Below are positions 1,805-43,200 of a stretch of DNA of 64,000 nt, in pieces. This DNA comes from Zygnema circumcarinatum SAG 698-1b (lineage: Eukaryota > Plantae > Zygnematophyceae), in contig CM074808.1 in assembly GCA_037447605.1 (NCBI GenBank), positions 1,612,001-1,676,000 of the forward strand, written 5' to 3'. The notes beneath the pieces are model-generated. The model had not been told where the DNA came from. It worked only from the letters and a program-made list of their open reading frames with translations, and did not search any database. The stretch's first letter is position 1. Every line of letters starts with the position of its first letter. A program made the translations under genes and the position numbers.

Positions 1805-3084
1805 CAATAAGCAACATGTGACAGCGCAGCCTATTGCTGTGTGCCACGTGTCCAACCTAGATTCCTCCAGTTCAGACCATCAGAACAGGACCTAGCGCCC
1901 TGTTCCCATTACAACTAGATCACCTAAGGACGACCGACACTACTGAGGATCGTACGGTGTACTTTCTAGGCTTAGATCCCTATCGTACACTACACTTTCC
2001 GAGTTGAAACTCATAATTATTGGATGTTTCAGAACTGACGTTTGTTAGTGGCTGCCTTCACCAAACAGGCGATGTGACGCTGTACTGTTCTCCGAGGATC
2101 AAAAACGACAGTCAGATTGCAGCTAACGCCGGTGAGCATTTTTCCATATGCGCCGGTATTTTCCCCTCATGCATCAAACAGTTTCAGTGGACGTCTCCCT
2201 CATGGTTGGGAGGCAGGACGCCGATCCCGATCGGAACAGTGCAAGTGGCAGGAAGTAGTTAGCATGTGGAAGCATGTGACGAATGAAAAGGAGATTTCGG
2301 AAACCCTGAATCTGCAGGAGTTCTTTCAACCAGTTTGGAGATGTAATCTGATATTGTGAGAGGGTGAGATTGGCAGAAAGAGGAAGTAGAGAGACAGAGA
2401 GAGGAAGAGAGAGACAGAGAGAAAGGTAGTGAGCAACCATAAGCAAACTTGAAATTCAGTAGGAAAGAGAGGGTAGTTCCGGGATATCCTCAACTGCTGC
2501 TTCCCCAGTCTTCTAGTGCACATCACACAGAACGGGGATTCAGTATAGTTAAGCGTGCTGCGACCGCCGTGCAGCGTAACTGTAACTGAAACGTAACTGT
2601 AGCTGCGACATTGTTCGCCCGCCCGGTACATGTACGGATCACGACCGGGGTTCCATCGAGCGGGCGTAAAATCGTTTTACGGGAGAATATCGGTTTCCCT
2701 GACATCAGCGTTTCGCAATCAGCGCTCGCCACGTGCTCGCCGCCAATTTGCTGTGAGCTCTGCGGCCTCAACCGGCGGTCACCGCGCGTCGATGGCGGAG
2801 AGCCAGCGTGGCAACCCCATCCGACGTGGCGACGCGCTATTGGGCACTTCCTTTTCGCCACGTCAGTGTATTGCCACAATTGTGTCGTGACATCCACGCC
2901 ACGTCGGCGCCACGTTGCACGGAGGGTGCGATGTGCTTCACGAGCTGTTGGGACGACAACTTCGGAATTCCGCGAGTGGGTTGGGCCGACGTGGCGTGCT
3001 TCGGGCCGCCTGCACGGCCGCCCCGCCGCCTGCCTCCGCGGGGCCGTTTGGCAACTGCCTCTCACTAGGGTTGGGGGCACGGTC

Positions 3085-3152
3085 CCCCTCCGACCCGTGC
3101 CCAGGGGCACGTGGGGGGGGGGGCATGCCCCTTTTTCGTGCCCCGTGACGTG
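3085..3152. repeat. GC-rich palindromic repeat unit (GTGCCC/GGGCAC, GGGCATGCCC), related to 3650-3885
   Basis: GTGCCCAGGGGCAC...G-run...GGGCATGCCCC TTTTTCGTGCCCCGTGACGTGA; the end is an inverted match to TCACGTGACAGGGGGCACG...GGCACGAAA at about 3689-3720. Confidence 0.65.
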
Positions 3153-3206
3153 ACTGCATTGAGCAATTCAAATCGGCCCCAAAAAGAATATAATATTTTA
3201 AAAATG

Positions 3207-3299
3207 GTACGAATGAAGGTACGGACAGTACAGATGAATGTACGAAACGTACGGATCAAGGTACAAATGTACGGAAAATATGAAAAGTACGGACAGTAC
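3207..3299. repeat. Degenerate short tandem array with 9 GTAC cores
   Basis: ggtacgaa/ggtacgga/agtacaga/tgtacgaa/cgtacgga/ggtacaaa/tgtacgga/agtacgga/agtact within 93 bp. Confidence 0.8.
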
Positions 3300-3649
3300 T
3301 CAACACAACTCTCAAAACTGAGGATCCAGCACAGAACAGTTTTTTAGCTTTTAGTTCTCACCTCTCAACTCTCCTAATGCCTCTTCTCACTTGTATTACC
3401 CCTCTTATCGCTTGTCTGCCTCCCACTCCTCACCCTAAGAGAGAGAGAGAGAGAGACAGACCACATCTACAAGGGTGTGTTAAGCAGGTCGTGAAGACAA
3501 CAAAATCGAACAGATTTTTGCGTGTTACTATTACTGTACACATAGTTACTGAGTGAGATCAATGCCAAATCATTTTACTGAGTGCTTTTTCTCTCTTTTC
3601 TTTTTTGTTAGAAAGAGATAGTTGCGATGCGGAACTGAACGCTGTCTTC

Positions 3650-3885
3650 AATCGTCACCGGCCCGGGCCCGGTCGTACGAGGTAAGCGTCACGTGACAGG
3701 GGGCACGGGGGGGCACGAAATATATGGGGAAAATTTTTGGAGGCGTGCCCCGGGCACGGACGGTCAAAAATGGGGGGCATGCCCCCCCCCCCGGGCATGC
3801 CCCCCCCCGGGCATGCCCCCCCCCCGGGCATGCCCCCCCCCGGGCATGCCCCCCCCCGGGCATGCCCGTGCCCCCGTGCCCCCAA
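3650..3885. repeat. Tandem GGGCATGCCC(C)n repeat with flanking GC palindromes
   Basis: Six consecutive gggcatgccc palindromes at about 3775-3866, separated by C-runs; also gtgccccgggcac nearby. Confidence 0.85.
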
Positions 3886-4041
3886 CCCTACCTCTCACTC
3901 TCGCTCTCGCTCTCACTCTCACTCCGTCTGAGGTCGACCCTCGGAGCGAGGGAGGGAGGGAAGGGCTGCCCGCCCGCGCGCGACGGACGGTTCCATGCTC
4001 CAACACGGCGACGACTCCGTTCGGTATTATATTCCAAGGAG

Positions 4042-4275
4042 CCTGGTTGCCAACCATTGGCGCCCGATCGAAACAACCATTCGAATGGTTCGGAACCAGT
4101 GGATGCCAATGGTTGGCAACCATTCGACTGGTCGTCAACCAGTAGACGTCCAACCATTGCCATCCAATGGTTGTCCAGTGGTTGCCGATCCACTGGGTCG
4201 ACCTGTGCAATGGTTCGCAAGCTCGCAACCATTCCAACGGTTGATCCAACCAATGGTCCGACCTGTGCAATTTTT
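4042..4275. repeat. Truncated copy of the hairpin/foldback repeat family of 11661-12314
   Basis: caaccattcgactggtcgtcaaccagtagacgtccaaccattgccatccaatggtt is the near-perfect reverse complement of about 11695-11748. The copy ends in ccgacctgtgcaattttt, like the 12290-12314 terminus. Confidence 0.85.
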
Positions 4276-8363: not shown

Positions 8364-8532
8364 GGGTAGTGATATTTCCACCCCTTTTTTGGATCCAAAC
8401 ACCCCTGCCCGGCCGGGCAGACATAAAAAAGGACAAATAACGGAAAATGGCGTTTTCACACATTCTTAGAATCGATACAACACCTTTTTCCGTCGGGCAA
8501 ATTTTATTTTACAAAAAAAAGGTCGAAACCCT
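8364..8532 (+). repeat. MULE left terminal inverted repeat
   Basis: Reverse complement of 11432-11599 with only a few mismatches. Confidence 0.95.
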
Positions 8533-8595
8533 AAAGAGTGCGTCCGCCCTGCCCCATCAACCCCCCCCTTCAAGCAGTTCGCGCGACGCACCAGA

Positions 8596-10514
8596 TGATG
8601 GAGTTCGCCACGCGGGAGGAGTTGATTGAAGATCTCAGGAACAGCCATAAACAGGAAGGAGTGGTACTCACCGTCAAGAGGAGCAAGGAGAAACGGGTGG
8701 TCCTAAAGTGTGACCGAGGTGGGCTGTATGAAAACCGTTTAAACTTGACAGATGGAACTCGTCAAAGGAAAACGCATACAAGACTCACTAACTGTGAGTT
8801 TGAAATCATATGCTCATCACTAAAGGGTGTTTGGGCAGTTCGCAAAATTTGCGGCAGTCACAACCATGAGCTAGATGTCAACTTGGCAGGCCATGCAGTG
8901 ACACGACGCTTAAGCAGTCCAGAGAAGGCTAGAGTGCGAGCACTTAGTGGCCAAGGCTTGGCACCAAAGAATGTTATCAGCGTTCTTCGAGAAGAGTTTG
9001 GAAATAGCCGCTCAACAGCCAGGGACATCTACAACGAGCTTAAGGTTGCTCGAGCAGAGGAGTTAAGAGACCGCAGACCCATTGAAGCATTAGTGGAGCT
9101 AATCTCCTGTACGAACTATTTCAGTAAGGTACGGCTGGTGGGAGGCGTGGTTGATTGTGTGTTCTTTATGCACCAATCATCAGTCAATATGTGCCAGACA
9201 TTCAATACAGTCTTCCTTCTTGACTGCACCTACAAGACTAATAAGTTTGGCATGCCTCTACTGAATGTGGTTGGCATCACATCCACGTATGCAACATTTA
9301 ATGCTGGCTTTGCGTTCATGCACGAGGAAAACGAGGAGGCATACACCTGGGTTTTGCAACAATTTTCTGTGGTTGTAACTCCTAAGGTCCTATGCACGGA
9401 CCGAGAGTTGGCTTTAATGAACGGGATTGCACAAGTCTTTCCGGGCTGCCACAATATCCTTTGTTGTTGGCATATTAATAAAAACGTGCTTGCTAATTGC
9501 AAGATAAGCTTCTCTGATGTCGAATGGGAGGAGTTTATGAAGCGATGGAATCTGGTTGTCTCGAGCAAATCGGTTGAACTCTTTGAGGCGGCTTTAGGTG
9601 CGTTTAAAGAGACTTACTTAAAAAGTCACCCAGCTGCTTGGCATTACGTTAACAAGACATGGATGCCATACAAGGAGAGATTTGTAGCATGCTTTGTAGA
9701 TGAGTTTCCCCACTTTGGTAATGCTAGCACATCTCGAGTAGAGGGAAACCATCATAAGATCAAGTCATATCTTGGTGTGGGAACATTGCACTTATTTCTG
9801 GCAACAAAGCGGTTGGGGCTTATGCTGGCTAATCAACAGGTAGAACTCAATGCTGCTATTGAGAAGCAGAAACAACGATTGGCACATCGTTTCAACCATC
9901 ATTGTTTCAAGGATTTGATCTTCAAGGTTTCTGAATTTGCTTTGGACAAACTGTTGGAACAGTTAAAACTGGCTGAAAATGGGGGATATGAAGAGCAGAT
10001 ATGCAGTATGCAGTTCAGAAAGTCATGGGGACTACCCTGTCATCATTATATTCGGGGCTGTTTAGAAACCAAAACTCCAATCTACTTACAAGATATTCAT
10101 GAGCAGTGGCTATTGATCAGGAATCCTTTGGCTTTTCCAAGTGTCAATGTAGTTGCGCTACCATATGAACCATTTATGGAGAAGATGACAGGTACTTTAC
10201 AAGAAGTACTCAGTGTTGGGAATCCTCGTGCAGGCAGCTTGATGGCTCGCCTTAGTGAAGTCCTGGATACGCCAGAAGTCGAAATTCAAGAGCCTTTAGT
10301 TGTAGTTAAGAAACGTGGTAGACCAGCAGGTTCTAAGAAGAAGACAAGCATCATCAGAGATAAATCTCACTTTGAATATGTAGAAGGACCTAAGTGTAGG
10401 GTTTGTAGTCAAGCAGGGCATAACTCCAGAACTTGCTCGCAAAAAGTGATCACCATCGATGAAGGACCTTCCCAGCTGCTTTCAGAGGGGGCAGGGTGGT
10501 TGAGCTTAGGGTAA
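8596..10514 (+). CDS. MULE/FAR1-type DDE transposase (first ATG at 8596; C-terminus may be extended by splicing)
   Basis: N-terminal FAR1/WRKY-GCM1-like zinc domain (C...C...HNH), catalytic LLDCTYKTN, TDRELAL, CCWHINKN and SRVEGNH motifs, SWIM-like CSMQFRKSWGLPCHH, AT-hook-like KKRGRP, zinc knuckle CRVCSQAGHNSRTC. No internal stops. Confidence 0.95.
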
Positions 10515-11431
10515 GTTTCTACCCTTAACTTTTTTTTTTGTCCTTAAGTCCTTTGCAATGAGTTCTTTGCGGTCCTTTATGCAGTTGTTTTTATAACAGC
10601 CAAATACTGGTGGTTTGGGAGGGCTGCAGGTGGGGGTAAGTGTTGTCATGAAAACAACATCTGGCGATAGAGCTTCAATAGAACATCCATCTAGAGGCGA
10701 GAGAGCTATCACAAGAGAGTACAAAATCGAGGAACAAAAGAGTTTGTTGTAGATTGTAGTAATGTCTTGCTTAATCTTTTGGCTCATTTACACACCTCAG
10801 TGGGCTGCCAGTTGACAAGTGTTTTTGGAATAGAAGCAAAGCTTCAGACTGTGTAGAACCAATTCTATCTTTTGAGGAACAGCCTGCCTCTTGCTGAGCG
10901 GCAGGAACCCTATGGAACATAATTTGTGTTCAAGAAGTCGATTCACCAAACAATGTAAGCTTTATGTTCTAGAGGATGTATGTTAAGCCTTACAACCTAT
11001 GGGGCTTACAACCTATGGCTTGCTCTGGCGATGGCCATGCTCAATATGAAGCCATGCCCATGGCTGGACCCCATCCATAAGTCCATAATGTCGGCCTGAC
11101 TGAAAATTTCCATAGAACATAGCCAGTTTCGCAACCTTGGCCTGATCTTAGTCAGTTTTTGGTCTTGTTCCGTGGGGCAGTTACAAGAACATAGGACCAT
11201 AAAACGGCCGTTAATCGGCTGCACACGTAGCGTCGGGCCTTGACCTATAGCCAATGGTTATCCGCCACGTGTACAAATTTGTACACGTGCCGTGTCTCAG
11301 TTGGATCTTACGTTCCTGGATTTACTGGCGAGTAGAGGTTCGGATCGAGCTTTAACTCAACGGAACTGATAGGATGCCGTACAATACCGTACAGGAATGT
11401 ACCGAAATGCAAGTACAGTACATCTTGTGGC

Positions 11432-11599
11432 AGGGTTTCGACCTTTTTTTGTAAAATAAAATTTGCCCGACGGAAAAATGTGTTGTATCGATTCTAAAAA
11501 GGTGTGAAAACGCCATTTTCCGTTATTTGTCCTTTTTTATGTCTGCCCGGCCGGGCAGGGGTGTTTGGATCCAAAAAAGGGGTGGAAATATCACTACCC
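11432..11599 (-). repeat. MULE right terminal inverted repeat
   Basis: Reverse complement of 8364-8532. Confidence 0.95.
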
Positions 11600-11660: not shown

Positions 11661-12314
11661 AAAAGTTCCACAGTTCGGACCAGTGGATCGGCAACCATTG
11701 GATGGCAATGGTTGGACGTCTACTGGTTGGCAACCAGTCGAATGGTTGTTTCGGTCCGCAACCACTGGTTGGCAACCAGTCGACTGGTTTGGAACCAGTG
11801 GATGCCACTGGTTGGCAACCAGTCGACTGGTTTGGAACCAGTGGCATCCACTGGTTGGCAACCATTCGACTGGTTGTTTCGGTCCGCAACCACTGGTTGG
11901 CAACCAGTCGAATGGTTGTTTCGATCCGGCGGCACTGGTTGGCAACCAGTGGATGCCACTGGTTGGCAACCATTCGACTGGTTGCCAACCAGTGGATGCC
12001 ACTGATTGGCAACCAGTCGAATGGTTTGGAACCAGTGGCATCCACTGGTTGGCAACCAGTAGAATGGTTGTTTCAGTCCGCAACCACTGGTTGGCAACTA
12101 GTCGAATGGTTTGGAACCAGTGGCATCCACTGGTTGGCAACCATTCGACTGGTTGTTTCGGTCCGCAACCACTGGTTGGCAACCAGTCGACTGGTTGTTT
12201 GGAACCAGTGGCATCCACTGGTTGGCAACCATTCGAATGGTTGTTTCGGTCCGCAACCACTGGTTGCCAACCAGTCGACTGGTTTGTCTAATGGTCTGAT
12301 CTGTGCAAAGTTTT
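11661..12314. repeat. Foldback-like element: imperfect terminal inverted repeats enclosing about 14 modules (mostly 42-43 bp) made of nested palindromes
   Basis: Left end aaaagttccacagttcggaccagtgg versus reverse complement of the right end aaaactttgcacagatcagaccattag. Modules are GGCAACCAGTCGAATGGTTGTTTCGGTCCGCAACCACTGGTT (42 bp) and GGCAACCAGTCGACTGGTTTGGAACCAGTGGATGCCACTGGTT (43 bp). Confidence 0.85.
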
Positions 12315-12380: not shown

Positions 12381-12536
12381 TAAACCTAAACCCTCAACCT
12401 TCAACCTTCAACCCTAAAACCCTACACCCGGAAGCTTCAGCCCGCAACCCTAAAACCCTAAACCCTGAAGCTTCAGCCCTCAACCCTTAACCCTAGAGCT
12501 TGAACCCTCAATCCTAAACCCTGAACCCTGAACCTT
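12381..12536 (+). repeat. Degenerate interstitial telomere-like tract (CCCTAAA/CCCTAAAA/CCCTGAA/CCCTCAA units)
   Basis: About 20 variant 7-8-mers, e.g. accctaaaaccctaaaccctgaag and atcctaaaccctgaaccctgaacc. Confidence 0.8.
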
Positions 12537-12909: not shown

Positions 12910-16232
<3,323 letters not shown>

Positions 16233-35939: not shown

Positions 35940-36564
35940 ACTGAAGTTCACTGAAGACAGTCTGATTGCCACTTAAGGTATCGATGTCTGGCCAAGTAAT
36001 GAAAGCCGTGTAGGCTGTCAGTCACGTCCCATGCCATGCAAAGGATGAGCTGCTCGGAAGCCGTGTACAATTGTTGGTGCGCGATTCCACTTCCTGGTTG
36101 GCGCCCTTTATTTCAGGAGCAAAAGTAATTTATGTGCATAACTTAATCTATGTGCAATCTCTGTCCATCTCACTCGTTCCCTCCCAATGCGGAAGTGACA
36201 CTGCATGAGGTGTATGTGTGTGCTTCAAGTGTGTGGCATTGGCCTAAGATTTGCTGGAAATTGATCCTGCGGTGGTTGGTTGAAGATTGTTTCCCCTGTC
36301 GTGAGGCGAGGGACTCGCTCCCCTGTGATCGTACAACAGAGCTGAAAAGAGCTCACTTATAATTTAGTCGATGCCTACGACTTCCCTTTAGTAGTTCAAC
36401 GATGGCCGTGAGTTCCCATGAAGGAAGAAGGCACGTTCAGAAATGTCCCTGGACACTCCACACCTCAAACAACCAGTAAGGCTTTCATAGTCGCGAGTCG
36501 CCCAACGCCAGGGAGGGAGGGAACAGTCTCCAGGCCCAGTTGCTGGCCCCCGCTCCATCCCCCA

Positions 36565-36715
36565 TGTGACCACGTCCCATGCGACCCATCTCCGATGTGA
36601 CCATGCGACTATGTCCCATAGCCATGGCATACCACTAGCGACTATGTCCCAGGCCCATGGCCATGCGACTATGTTCCATGGCCATGCGACTATGTCCCAT
36701 GCCCATGGCCATGCC
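36565..36715 (+). repeat. Degenerate minisatellite of about 21 bp (CCATGGCCATGCGACTATGTC-like)
   Basis: gcgactatgt(c/t) occurs 4 times with ccatggccat linkers. Confidence 0.8.
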
Positions 36716-37265: not shown

Positions 37266-40200
37266 ATGATTAAAATGGAGGACGCTATGACTGAAGATTC
37301 GATGTCGAAAGAAGTGCCAGAAGCTATGGATGAAGGGGGATTGTCCGAAAGGCAGGAAGGCAGCCCGGGTCCGACAAGCAGGGATGAGCTTAATGGATCT
37401 CAAGGAAATGGAGTTGCCAGTACATCAGAGTCTGAAGACGACCGTCTTCTCAAACTTCCACCCGTTCAGGGGTGAGAGAGCTAGCGCCAGTACTCTTTGT
37501 TAAGGTGGACTCAGGAGTAGAGAGGAAATGTATGGAACCTTCTGCTTTTCCCTGATTGGAATATAAAGGGTATTTTATTTGCAGGAAGACAGGGGGGCCT
37601 ACACGAAGGTCTTCAAAGGGTGGCTGGACTCCGGAAGAGGCAAGTGTTGAAGTTTTGTTGAAAGGCCGCAATATGTGTAGCTGCTGGACGCACATGCACT
37701 GACGATTATGTTACTCAGATAGCTCGCACGAACTAGTCTTAATATTTCTTTAATGTGTGAGAACGGACAGTTTTTAACAGTGCAGACAGAGCTCTGGGAT
37801 CACTTTGCTTTTGGGATAGTTGTTTAGGAGATACAGGCTTTTCTTCCTCGTTATCTGCAGTGAAGTATCAACTAAATAGCATGGAATAGTGGTGTTGACT
37901 GCAGCTCCATCTCGATGGTATGCCTCTTTGAGTGGTATTCTTGGACAGTGTATTAGTAATAGGAATGTTGGATGTAACCTGCTTTCCCATTCTGAGATGC
38001 CACTCCATGTTCAGTGGATAGCCACCAGATGGATTGAGTCTAGACAGTTGAAGGCTTGGAGTTTTCATTACATGCAATAAGCTTTGCAGAGTCAGGGTTG
38101 GTTTTGCCTTTTCCCAACCTTGCTCACGCAGATTAGATTGTATGTTAACTATTGACGGTAGAATAAGTCCCAGAGGCGCTTGGCTCGTTCGCTGAAGGGA
38201 CACCGTGGCATGCTGTATTGTCTGTCGCCAGGATGAAATACTTCGACGAGCTGTTCAGTGCTTTAAGGGCAAGAACTGGAAGAAAATTGGTCAGTCCTCA
38301 TTCCTGGTTACAACGTCCACTGCTTAACTGTTTGCATGCCCGTCTCAACTTTCGGGAAAGTTGCACAATTATTGGCGATTTCTTTGAAAGCAGCAGCATT
38401 GAAATTGCTCTCTGTGGTTAACAGCAGGTGAGGTTTTTGAAATCTGTAGCAGTTCAGAGTTTTTGCTGAATCCCTTTTTGGTGTTGTATGCAGCCGAGTT
38501 CTTTCCTGATCGTACCGACGTGCAGTGCCTGCATAGGTGGCAGAAAGTTCTCAATCCCGACCTTGTGAAGGGACCTTGGACCAAAGAGGTGCAATTCCCG
38601 TCAGCTTACCGACTAAGTTATTCGTAGGTGCTTGGAGGATCTTGGCATAGAAGTTCACTTGTGTCGAGGTGCCGTTGCTGGGGCTTCCGGTTACGAGAGG
38701 CCGTTACGGCACATAACGGCACATCCCTTGTGTCTTTGCCAAGTCAGCTGTAGGTTTTGGATAGCGAGAATCTGAGTTCAGATAACACTTTTGAGGAGAA
38801 AACTTGTAATCTGGAGTGCTTGCATTTGAGAAGTACGCCATTGTTTAGGCAGTTCTTTGTGGATTTTGCAGGAGGACGAGAGAATCGTTGAGCTGGTGCA
38901 GAAGTATGGGGCCAAGAAATGGTCCATCATTGCGCGAAATCTTCCTGGTCGGATCGGCAAACAGTGCCGAGAGAGGTGCGTGTGTCATCAATAATCATTT
39001 CTGGGTGCACGTCAGTGTCTCTGAAGTTTGTGGTTTTATTCCGTGGATATCAACTGATGAACTGGAATGTGGAACCGGTTCCAAACATGAGTAGCACAGG
39101 TGAGGTCGATGAATACTACTTAGGTCTTTGCCACAATGTGGAGATGCGTTGTCATCCTTTTGAGTTTTTAAGAAGACTTTTTTGTTGCTTGCAGATGGCA
39201 CAATCACCTGAATCCAAACATCAAAAGAGATGCATGGTCGGAGGAGGAGGATCTAGCTCTGATAAAGGCGCATCAGCTATATGGCAACAAATGGGCAGAG
39301 ATAGCAAAGTTCTTACCTGGAAGGTGAGTGCCAAGGAGCATGCCTTATGGCTTCGGTCTGAATTAGAGACACGCTGGCCAGAGATTGCGATGGCACTCTC
39401 AAATGCGAATTGCGATAAAAATCAAGTGTTTGAAGCGTGCAGTGTCTTGCTGGGCTTCCAGGACTGATAACTCGATCAAGAATCACTGGAACTCATGCAT
39501 GAAACGCAAAGTGGATCCTGAAACAGCCACCGATCCAGTTTCAAGAGCTCTTGCTGCATACCAAGCGCGGGAAGATGCAGAGGATGCTGGCATCACTGGA
39601 GAAGACTGCCAAAGAGCTGGAATGGTTCCAGATCCTGCAGCTCCTGAGTCTTTGACTGTTTCAACTGAGGCCATAAGCGCCGTGAAGGAAGAGAAGGATG
39701 AAGAAGTGCTTGAACTTCCTATTAACAGTATGAATCAACCCGAAAATCTTAAATCTATATCTTCCTCAAAAGGGAAACCTGGACCCGCATTTGCTGGCAA
39801 TGAAACTGGGAACCCAGGAGGAAACGAAGAGCCGAAAGTAATCCGTAAGGATGTGAAAGGATCGAGATCTGTTGGTGCTGCATCTGGAAAGGGAGGACCC
39901 AATCGCCGACCTCAGGCCTCAGTCAATACCCCATATAGTCTTGAGGGAAAACAATCATCAGTGCTAGCAATGCCATCAGCCATGTCTGTTCCACCTGTTC
40001 CAGTGCCGATCATTCCAGTCTCGTATCCTTTACCCTCAGAGATCCCCTTGGCCCCTGTCCCCAAAGCTCTCGGAGCTGTTCCAGCTCCAATGATGCCTCT
40101 TCCCCTCTCAATGAATATACCTTCATTACCTACCTATTTTGGTGGAGTAGCTGGTCCTCGGATGCTCTCCAACTTTTCTTCGGCAGTGTTAAAAGCCTGT

Positions 40201-43200
40201 GAACAATCTGTAATTCACCAGCCTTTGGGAATCGGTGTCAAGACTGAACCAGTTACATATGAGACGTTAGCAGAAGGCCGAGTTTTTCAGGCTTCCTGCC
40301 CAGTAGAAGTTGTTATGAGTGACGAGCATGACTCGGAAACTGGGAAGGTTTCCCCTCGTGGCGATTGCGTGCACAGAGAAGACGGATTCCAGCCTTGCGA
40401 GGTGCCAATGGAAAACTTTGATACGACAGTCAAGGTGGAGGCTTCCTCTGAGTTTGAGGCCTTCTCCCCTGCAGTGAAGAACTCAGTATGTTACCAGAAC
40501 GTACAAGACATGGATGTGCCTTTCTTCAATTACAACCTGTTGAGCCCATCGGATCCTACCAGACTGGCCTACTCTCCTTTAGGTATGCGGAATATTGCTC
40601 CAGCATTTTGCAGTACTCCCATGAGTTTGCCATTGTCCTCCTCTCCAGTGCCAGGCAATGGCAGCCCGTTATCAAAGCTACGAAGTGCAGCCAAGTCATT
40701 CAGTAATACACCCTCTATTTTGAGGAAAAGGAGACGACTATTGGAACCAAGTCTAGGTACCACAAGTGCTGGCCGTGAGGAACCATCATCGTCTGCTCCT
40801 TTGGCAGAAGCCGGAAAGAAGTTAGACGATGGGCAGTTTTCAAACGATTCTCATCAGCAGCCAACCTCGGCAGTCACAGAGTTATCTACTCCTGCTGCAT
40901 CTCAAGCGCCGAATTCTTTGAACCCTTCCAGTCTGCAAAATGCTCCTCTGAAGTCAGCAAGTCAAGACTGCCAGACAAGGGCTGATCCCATGGCAATTGC
41001 TAATGCACAGTCAGATCCAAAACTGACAAACCCTGGGAAGCAGCCACATCCCACTTCCAGTTCATCTGGAGAGGATTTTAATAAAGGAGGGAGGGAGGAC
41101 TTAACGAAGAATGTCGGAGGTTCATCTGGTGATAGCTACCAGCAGTCTTCTGATCGTCCACTCCCATCTACACCTCCGCACCGATTGCCGTCTAGAGTAT
41201 CTGGTCTTACAGGAAACTCACAACCTTCTGGGTTTGTTTACGGAGCTATTCTGCCGATGCGAATGCCACCTCAGCTCCAGCCAATACAGCTGAGAAAGAA
41301 TACGACAAATAGCGAGACTAGTGTCAATGGCGGGAGAAACCAGCAGGTTAAAGAAGGGGTTGCTCTGACAGTACGAAATGCTGAGATGGTTTGTGAGCCA
41401 AGAAGCTTAGGGAATGGATCTGGCAATGTAGGAGGCAAAGAACGGGATTCAAATGTAAATGGACGAGGAGAAAGACGGATGTTACAACTTGTTTCAAAGG
41501 TGCAGTAATTCATTCCAACGCCTTCAATTTCAGTATTTCCCCTCGCACAGTAATGAAAAGACGAGCAAAAAAAAATGTGTGGGGTCTCTGTTGCGTCTTC
41601 TGTACGGTATTCTTGTTTTTGTAAACGATTGCGTGTCATATTCAATCTTTACGCCCTGCAGAGTGAGGGTTTGACTTTCTTGGAACTGAGGCTATCAACA
41701 AAAAGAGCTCTGCACTATTAGCCTATGTGGCAGGGAGTTCTGCTGGCCAGAGTGATACTCTGATATTTTAAACAGTCATCGATTTGTGCTGTCTTCACCT
41801 TCTGGGAATTGCTCAATCTGTGCCAAAAGCTCACTGCATTGGTGTCGTCCATCCCCCCCCCTCTGGTGGTGCAGGAAGTGGGACGTGATGGAGTGTCAGT
41901 TGCAGAATCCTCGGTGCTTGTGGAGCAGCGCCTGAATGTTCCGCCAGCAAGCATGCTTGTGGAAGGCAGCAGCTTTCACGCACCTGTCCTGTTGAGAGCA
42001 TCTGTGGGAGGAGCCCCTGCCTCCTACCTGGTGGCTCCTGTTGGCCCTGGGTTTGCAGGGTTGAAGGCAGCTCTGACAGCTGCCGGAGGCTACGAGCAGA
42101 TCCGGTTTGAAACTATGCAGGTGCCTATGTTGAGGATGTCAGCACCTACATGTGGGAATGCATCAGAATATGAGACGCTGCCTGCTACTGTACCGGCGCA
42201 GAAAAACATTATGGCTGCGATGAATTTGGCAATGGGAGGCACTGAGATGACGCCCGAGAAGGAGAGCTGCCGATCTGGAGTCTCTGATGCAGAAATGGAC
42301 ACTCAGCCTCAGTTTCATGCACCTCCAGTAGTTCGGAGTCAGTCGTTTGACGGTGCAAGAGAGGGAGGAGAGAGTTTCGAGGTTGATGCCGGGCAAGATT
42401 GGGCCAACGATTCGTCCGTGCCGCCCCCTGAGCGGTTGACACCTGGACCCCGCTCAAGAGGGGCATGGCATGTCACTTGTGATGGATTGGCCGGCAATGA
42501 GCCAGATGGACCTGCTTTGTGAGAATCACTCCCCTGAACGGCTTTTATAAGATGCTTTCTTACGCTGCTATTGACTTGCCACTATGGCCATCTTTGACAT
42601 TGCCTCTGTTGCTCGTTCCATAACTTTTGCCGATGTTCTTTGCCCTTTTTATGAGGCGTCCCTTTTCAAGACACTAAATTTGGCAGCTGACGGTTGGTTT
42701 GCATATTGCAGTGTGAGCGGTGTGCTAAGGGTGGAAGGCGTAGTGGACTCTCCGGCATCCACATGGAGAACACCGTGGAAGCTGGAAATTCTGGGATCTG
42801 CACGCAAAAGTAGTGATTCCCTCATGGAGGTTGGCGACATATGCCCAATGCTTCGGGAATGTCGCAAGCAGGTTACCAATGATATGAGCGCAGGAAGTTT
42901 CTGCATGTTGGCATTATTGTGATTGTGGTGCTGATGACTCTATGACTGGACAGGGAGCGCGCATGGAAGTGAACTGTGCTCTTGACCTCACCCTTTTGCG
43001 GCGTCAGCTTTCGGTTTTAACGCGGCTGGGCGGTTATGCAGGAACTTGATGGCCTACTTGGAGAAGACCCCCCCAAGCCTGTCAATCTGATGCGGCAGCT
43101 TGATGAAGACGACACTGAGGATCCGACAAGGCCAGATGCAGAACTTGCAAAGATGCATACTCCAGTGTCCAAAATAAAGCCTGAACGTTGGGGCACTCCT

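Follow-up and report, generated by a model that had tools for sequence, protein, structure and literature searches.

The window analysed here, a 64,000-nucleotide stretch of the genome of the alga Zygnema circumcarinatum, starts with a gypsy-type retroelement. Further right it carries an intact MULE on the plus strand (8364-11599), a dense repetitive block (11661-12314) and the exons of an adenylosuccinate synthetase gene, which start at 13988 and whose best solved relatives are the plant enzymes 1dj3 and 1dj2. Within the block we recognize one element copy of 637 bases (11669-12305), non-coding and bounded by 13-nucleotide inverted termini that start with CACAG. A truncated and inverted second copy (the left copy) lies at 4043-4267 on the minus strand. 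The MULE, identified by its terminal inverted repeats (TIRs), its open reading frame and a Pfam domain, is separate from the element. Its TIRs are 156 nt long and 98% alike, and they end at 11599, 61 bp from the start of the block at 11661, which agrees with the original prediction that the block adjoins an intact MULE. The MULE reading frame is uninterrupted (639-658 aa, 8538/8595-10514; 639 aa from the first ATG at 8595) and encodes a transposase domain (Pfam, E = 4.7e-25), with weak FAR1/AFT-type matches at the N-terminus. The flanking 9-mers, A9 and A8T, form a 9-bp duplication of an A-run. This MULE is probably young.

Other repeats and reading frames share the window with these features. 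A second non-coding TIR element, 825 bp long (3066-3890), has perfect 17-nt inverted termini starting with TAGGG, a perfect 8-bp flanking duplication (CCTCTCAC, at 3058-3065 and 3891-3898) and, in its interior (3775-3867), a 16-bp array with a C-run and GGGCATG palindromes. It looks like a recently inserted hAT-type MITE, and lies 150 bp from the truncated copy of the CACAG-ended family. On the other side, 76 bp to the right of the 637-base element and some 1.4 kb upstream of the adenylosuccinate synthetase gene, a degenerate tract of telomere-like 7-mers (12381-12534; variants CCCTAAA, CCCTCAA and CCCTGAA) is organized in a 36-bp higher-order unit containing GAAGCTTC. This tract could be what remains of an interstitial telomere, or else a group of promoter motifs resembling telo-boxes. 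Further to the right there is an imperfect minisatellite of 21-27 bp (36555-36714), rich in CCATGG and CATGCGAC units, and an uninterrupted reading frame of 707 aa (39385-41508) that belongs to no Pfam family, its Myb-like match being sub-threshold (E = 0.2). The reading frames beside it (38919-39467 and 41809-42522) likewise have no family.

Termini, flanks and the second copy

The 5' terminal inverted repeat of the element (CACAGTTCGGACC, 11669-11681, plus strand) and the 3' one (CACAGATCAGACC in the minus-strand reading, 12293-12305) were delimited by pattern search and by the alignment of termini. They are identical at 11 of 13 positions, as fits the earlier claim that the block has imperfect terminal inverted repeats. 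The inner part of each terminus is a half-site, (G)ACCAGT at the 5' end and (G)ACCATT at the 3' end. The CACAG terminus is also present twice in the left copy, on the minus strand (4255-4267 and 4195-4207), and a pattern search allowing up to one mismatch found none elsewhere in the 64-kb window. All four termini have the half-site, as ACCAGT or ACCATT, for their inner part. Between the two termini of the main copy we distinguish, all on the plus strand, a 5' subterminal region with degenerate half-sites (11682-11721), common to the left copy and recognized by its complementarity to it; a tandem array of 14 modules of 42/43 bp (11722-12258), delimited by Tandem Repeats Finder, motif scan and module alignment; and a final partial module (12259-12292), obtained by cutting the sequence into modules, which runs into the 3' terminus.

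The element is flanked on the left by the 8-mer AAAAGTTC (11661-11668) and on the right by the 8-mer CAAAGTTT (12306-12313), both on the plus strand, which are a candidate target-site duplication (TSD). In this single complete copy, whose flank is AT-rich and nearly palindromic, the two 8-mers match at six of eight positions, and among registers of 2 to 12 bp a good match was obtained only at 8 bp. The empirical probability of matching at six or more of the eight positions is 0.005, rising to 0.015 among AT-rich pairs. That the flanking sequences are a decayed 8-bp TSD is thus suggested by one complete copy, not proven. The 8-mers found outside three termini, from two insertions (4268-4275, 11661-11668 and 12306-12313) are alike; each read towards the element, they are AAAAATTG, AAAAGTTC and AAACTTTG. 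This likeness may reflect a preference of the CACAG-ended family for A/T-rich, near-palindromic targets.

The termini of hAT elements are of the YARNG type, and CACTA elements have 3-bp TSDs. The CACAG termini depart from the hAT consensus at the third base, which is C and not the expected purine. Set against the hAT criterion of an 8-bp TSD, the observation is a flank match of 6/8 at 8 bp in a single complete copy. A length of 8 bp is compatible with the P superfamily (7-8 bp), in which the partner transposase would have a THAP domain. The TIR and candidate TSD of the element match neither CACTA nor canonical hAT ends.

A truncated relative of the block had been predicted at 4042-4275. Alignment and terminus search show that it is present, its element part spanning 4043-4267. 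It contains two termini, the shared subterminal region, one inverted A-type module and a B'-type spacer (the module types are described below). Its homology to the main copy stops at 4043 without a terminus. We searched 3090-4060 for the cause of the truncation and found no element boundary at 4043, so truncation by the adjacent retroelement or MITE was rejected. The terminus of the left copy is duplicated, at a distance of 60 bp (4195-4267), with CAAT after each instance and a small palindrome in the 47 intervening bp; this doubling could be a tandem end duplication or the product of an abortive repair. No additional copies of the family were detected in the 64-kb window beyond these two (blastn with word size 7, and terminus search), and a 20-mer scan of metagenomes for copies elsewhere returned four single chance matches in unrelated contigs. 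Our data support the presence in the window of a non-coding element with defined bounds and flanking TIRs, and of a second copy that has diverged from it.

The two blocks are mutually inverted and 96% complementary over 57 nt (4117-4173 against 11692-11748), and might on these grounds be taken for the arms of one foldback or composite transposon of about 8 kb, with the MULE as cargo. Such a construction is scarcely credible. The terminus of the left block (CTGTG, ending at 4267) and that of the right block (CACAG, starting at 11669) point inwards, towards each other, which contradicts a single element made from both blocks. Moreover, the right block has both its own termini and a candidate flanking duplication, and the outer edge of the left block, at 4043, has no terminus. 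A relation between the block and the MULE was rejected too: TIRs and a TSD of its own delimit the latter, and nowhere outside the two blocks is there an enrichment of the half-site. The MULE is an independent insertion beside the element. One might also think of a sequence that was never mobile, i.e., a host cis-element or local satellite, such as a phased array of binding sites for a host factor acting on the adenylosuccinate synthetase gene. The block indeed lies about 1.7 kb upstream of this gene, beside the telomere-like tract, and has no known transposase. Yet, the defined inverted termini with their flanking 8-bp match, and a second copy with the same terminus at an unrelated place in the window, make this explanation very improbable.

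A direct array of palindromic modules

The block (11661-12314) is a dense lattice of one 7-mer, ACTGGTT / AACCAGT. A scan for A[CA]TGGTT / AACCA[GTC]T returned 52 matches in its 654 bp, against about 0.2 expected, and just a handful in the remaining 63 kb of the window. Successive half-sites alternate strictly in orientation, with spacings of 10/9/10/14 (43 bp) or 10/9/19/4 (42 bp). The alternation has four breaks, which correspond to the 5' subterminal region, the divergent tail of the module called B' and two half-sites with a point change.

Tandem Repeats Finder identified periods of 42, 43, 85 and 194 bp. We defined modules by cutting the sequence at each copy of a 17-mer palindrome that has a single central base (14 copies, with G at the centre in 12 and C in two), which resulted in 14 modules of two kinds. 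The A module has 43 bp and terminates in a hairpin with a 9-bp stem and a 3-nt loop, whereas the B module has 42 bp and terminates in an asymmetric 10-nt spacer. With the loop given in brackets, the first seven modules are B, A(ATG), A(CAT), B, B', a 24-bp piece and an A(ATG) with a GCC spacer; the following seven are A(CAT), B, A(CAT), B, a 46-bp A(CAT), B and the partial module that runs into the 3' end. Within the array, an 85-bp higher-order unit can be recognized, as can a duplication of 194 bp. Apart from the 17-mer, the modules include a TCGA palindrome, present in 12 exact copies and one variant, and the GTGG-loop-CCAC hairpin with the 9-bp stem, present in seven copies. The loop of the latter reads ATG three times (at 11798, 11949 and 11992) and CAT four times (at 11841, 12035, 12120 and 12208).

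This architecture confirms that some 14 modules are assembled from three palindromic sub-blocks, for which we counted 14, 12-13 and seven copies. The further claim that pieces of 42, 43, 24 and 19 bp are combined in different orders was correct for 11934-11957, a true 24-bp piece that is an A module without the 19 bp between two direct half-sites. It was wrong for 11958-12000, where the supposed succession of 19 and 24 bp is a single, ordinary 43-bp A module in which the 3-nt spacer is GCC instead of TGG. The long reading frames of the block are read-through of the repeats and have no relatives: a protein word search with the 204-aa read-through frame gave 587 word candidates, none of which scored. 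No Rfam family was found for the block. A site-specific invertase switch and a CRISPR-like array were set aside, given the eukaryotic genome, the loops of only 3 nt and the lack of a recombinase nearby.

The block had been described as a foldback element, which in the strict sense it is not. Its interior is a direct tandem array, in which the 10-nt B spacer occurs six times in one orientation and never reversed, and GTTTGGAAC five times in one orientation and never reversed. The TIRs are just 13 nt long, and the element is only 35.5% identical to its own reverse complement when the two are compared in register. The unidirectional spacers and this low identity exclude a true foldback symmetry. 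Folded as single-stranded DNA, the block is very stable (-251 kcal/mol, against -113 for shuffled sequences, z = -28). Because its spacers have a fixed orientation and its self-complementarity is low, this strong fold must come from local palindromes that pair with one another and not from two long arms. We thus describe the block as a non-coding, non-autonomous element with short TIRs, in which palindromic modules repeated directly in tandem make up the body.

Variation at mirror positions and its origin

The column-by-column alignment of the 12 full modules (six A and six B) revealed that non-singleton polymorphisms are restricted to columns 16 and 21, which are two mirror positions of the TCGA palindrome, and to the loop columns 39-41. 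The other differences consist of five isolated singleton base changes, the replacement of the spacer TGG by GCC, and the B' tail. Across the first 26 columns, no difference separates the A from the B modules. At the two mirror positions of the TCGA palindrome, 5 bp apart, all four arm states are present: GC and TA make perfect palindromes, and GA and TC make imperfect ones that are mutual reverse complements. The ATG and CAT loops are exact reverse complements inside identical 9-bp stems, and the passage from one to the other by point mutation would require three simultaneous substitutions. Likewise, the GCC spacer corresponds exactly to the adjacent palindrome centre, GGC, in reverse complement. 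The hairpin with the 9-bp stem, whose loop is found in both directions, is the strongest of the modules (-8.3 kcal/mol). The hairpins with 7-bp stems have stabilities of -5.0 and -4.4 kcal/mol, and two of them have multi-base spacers that are never found as the reverse complement.

Comparison of the halves of the 194-bp duplication (11762-11917 and 11956-12111) revealed differences at 11 of 156 sites. Four of the differences are at the eight TCGA mirror positions and seven at the other 148 (Fisher P = 8e-4), where they amount to four isolated base changes and one replacement of a 3-nt spacer. Of four TCGA palindromes compared, three are in a different state in the two halves. In each of the two A(ATG)-A(CAT) pairs, one loop mirrors the other across the dyad that lies between them, and the two pairs are copies within this one duplication. 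The three CAT modules that come last are part of the 85-bp higher-order repeat.

The original prediction had stated that the hairpin centres occur in both orientations, independently of their neighbours, and had attributed this to repeated micro-inversion or template switching. Both orientations are indeed found for the ATG/CAT loop and, in the form of the four arm states, for the TCGA palindrome. The G/C centre of the 17-mer is ambiguous, because the flip of a single base is indistinguishable from a point transversion. The loops are independent in the sense of being uncoupled from the spacers of fixed orientation. Yet, both mirror-image pairs lie in one 194-bp duplication, which leaves repeated and independent flipping unsupported: all seven loops can be derived from a single loop inversion and a later duplication, so that they do not show recurrence at the loop. 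Recurrence is arguable only for the two TCGA mirror positions, and there too exchange between direct modules is a rival. Nevertheless, inversion or template switching at hairpins accounts most economically for the ATG/CAT loop, the four arm states and the TGG-to-GCC spacer; it is the words repeated, independent and foldback that were overstated.

Our results lead to an account that we regard as probable in its entirety, that of a non-autonomous CACAG-ended transposon whose array of half-sites was reshaped by slippage or unequal exchange and by template switching at hairpins. The block would be one copy of a non-autonomous cut-and-paste DNA transposon with 13-nt termini of the CACAG type and a decayed 8-bp TSD. 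Each of its modules is a chain of inverted copies of the 7-nt half-site, which recurs as the inner part of the termini. Changes in the number and order of modules would be due to slippage, or to unequal exchange among modules in direct orientation, and the pattern of the array shows the traces of these processes: the 85-bp unit, the duplication of 194 bp, a loss of 19 bp and a gain of 3 bp. While the DNA is replicated or repaired, template switching inside a hairpin arm, or from arm to arm, would either copy one arm from the other or invert the spacer. Judging from the pattern, it may have produced the ATG/CAT loop, the four TCGA states, the GCC spacer and the inversion of the A module in the left copy. 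Template switching between short inverted repeats is reported to cause both the homogenisation of arms and the reversible inversion of spacers (PMC8604942).

Within the limits set by one full and one truncated copy, from which the mechanism is drawn, template switching at hairpins is the best account of the variation at mirror sites. The sequence of the main copy calls for at least three templated events: one at the loop, one at the TCGA mismatch and one that gave the GCC spacer. The inversion of the A module in the left copy is a fourth, and further events at the TCGA palindrome are likely. In the left copy this module is inverted whole, together with both flanking 3-nt spacers, relative to the terminus and the B'-type spacer. 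Hence, inversions in the CACAG-ended family are not confined to loops.

The same element might have reached its present state without any ongoing flipping, if one ancient loop inversion and one inversion of the TCGA mismatch provided variants that were then shuffled by unequal crossing-over or gene conversion. Exchange among direct modules that already differ could reshuffle the states of mirror sites without new template switches, and it is favoured by the identity of A and B modules over their first 26 columns. The placement of both ATG/CAT pairs inside the 194-bp duplication, and of the last three CAT modules inside the 85-bp repeat, fits this scenario as well. Nevertheless, we think it unlikely. 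To obtain the four arm states by exchange requires crossovers within an interval of 4 bp. The high proportion of changed TCGA palindromes (three of four) contrasts with four base changes and one spacer swap at the other 148 positions of the duplicate pair. Finally, the passage from TGG to GCC is a change of three bases precisely to the reverse complement of the adjacent centre.

These patterns might also have been created by assembly or polishing, if quasi-palindromic reads were aligned in the wrong orientation and the consensus was switched at asymmetric positions. Pile-ups of mis-oriented reads would indeed also give variation confined to mirror-asymmetric sites. However, the fixed spacers of 10 and 3 nt, found every 42-43 bp, would make it costly to align in reverse any read of more than about 30 nt, the modules include ordinary unique substitutions, and the diverged second copy has its A module inverted with its flanking spacers. 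We find such an artefact quite improbable.

Function of the lattice and comparison with known systems

What might be the use of such a lattice? Since every terminus has the half-site as its inner part, the array most likely multiplies the binding site of a putative transposase. On the same grounds, a protein-binding reading of the half-sites is plausible. Helical phasing was rejected as evidence for it: the best period of the half-sites (10.75 bp, R = 0.59) merely reflects 43/4 and drifts from the 10.5-bp helical phase, at which the coherence is nil. There is a precedent in Galileo, where a THAP domain binds sites inside internal tandem repeats (PMC3688188). No candidate transposase associated with CACAG-type termini was found within the window, and neither an excision footprint nor an empty site was seen.

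The element is ordinary mobile DNA of a known kind, shaped by known processes, and we found no published description of a family that combines CACAG ends, a candidate 8-bp duplication and a half-site lattice. Its interest lies in that some 640 bp display both outcomes of template switching, the homogenisation of arms and the inversion of spacers, with a dependence on stem length that resembles what was reported in yeast. A genome-wide census of the family could provide a measure of template switching in a genome of the plant lineage, and the half-site is a bait for finding the partner transposase. A bolder view, possible but doubtful, is that the modules are mutation hot spots caused by hairpins, where changes at mirror sites exceed ordinary substitutions more than ten times, and that the lattice loads a multimeric transposase of an unrecognised lineage characterized by CACAG ends and an 8-bp duplication. 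If this were true, the genomic copies of the family would be a readout of hairpin or cruciform formation in vivo in a streptophyte alga.

The 12-bp TnpA motifs of En/Spm and the hexamers of Ac/Ds are short motifs that lie near the ends of these elements in both orientations and are transposase binding sites. Our element resembles these subterminal arrays in the reiteration of a short motif in both orientations, and differs from them in that its motifs fill the whole element in a regular lattice of 42/43 bp.

A closer likeness is found in DTC84 of Donax trunculus and in the pearl-like elements, which are MITEs containing tandem repeats (PMC3879986). Like our element, these are small, lack coding capacity and end in short inverted repeats, and they are flanked by a duplication, for which our element has a candidate. 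They also share with it a central array of core repeats in variable number, and the palindrome of each repeat is thought to drive the variation in length (PMC3879986). Here, in contrast, the core repeat is a chain of four inverted half-sites, the candidate TSD has 8 bp instead of being AA, and the repeat variants follow no fixed order. In the FB elements of Drosophila, in Galileo (P superfamily) and in Tetris, subrepeats reiterate a motif found near the ends, as they do here, and Tetris has seeded a satellite (PMC3688188, PMC4079207). These elements have long inverted arms, whereas ours has TIRs of 13 nt and a direct array whose orientation markers never invert, and can therefore fold only via local palindromes.

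As for the variation between modules, the nearest parallel is template switching at quasipalindromes (Ripley model; PMC8604942, PMC5453318, PMC8794818). Both of its outcomes, arm homogenisation and spacer inversion, are present in our array, and the inversion of the spacer at the hairpin with the longest stem is like that observed in yeast (PMC8604942, PMC5453318, PMC8794818). Homoplastic microinversions at hairpins have also been described (PMC3123225, PMC6824564). Those cases concern orthologues, and ours concerns paralogous modules within one mobile element, so that the template-switch events can be neither polarised nor counted on a tree.
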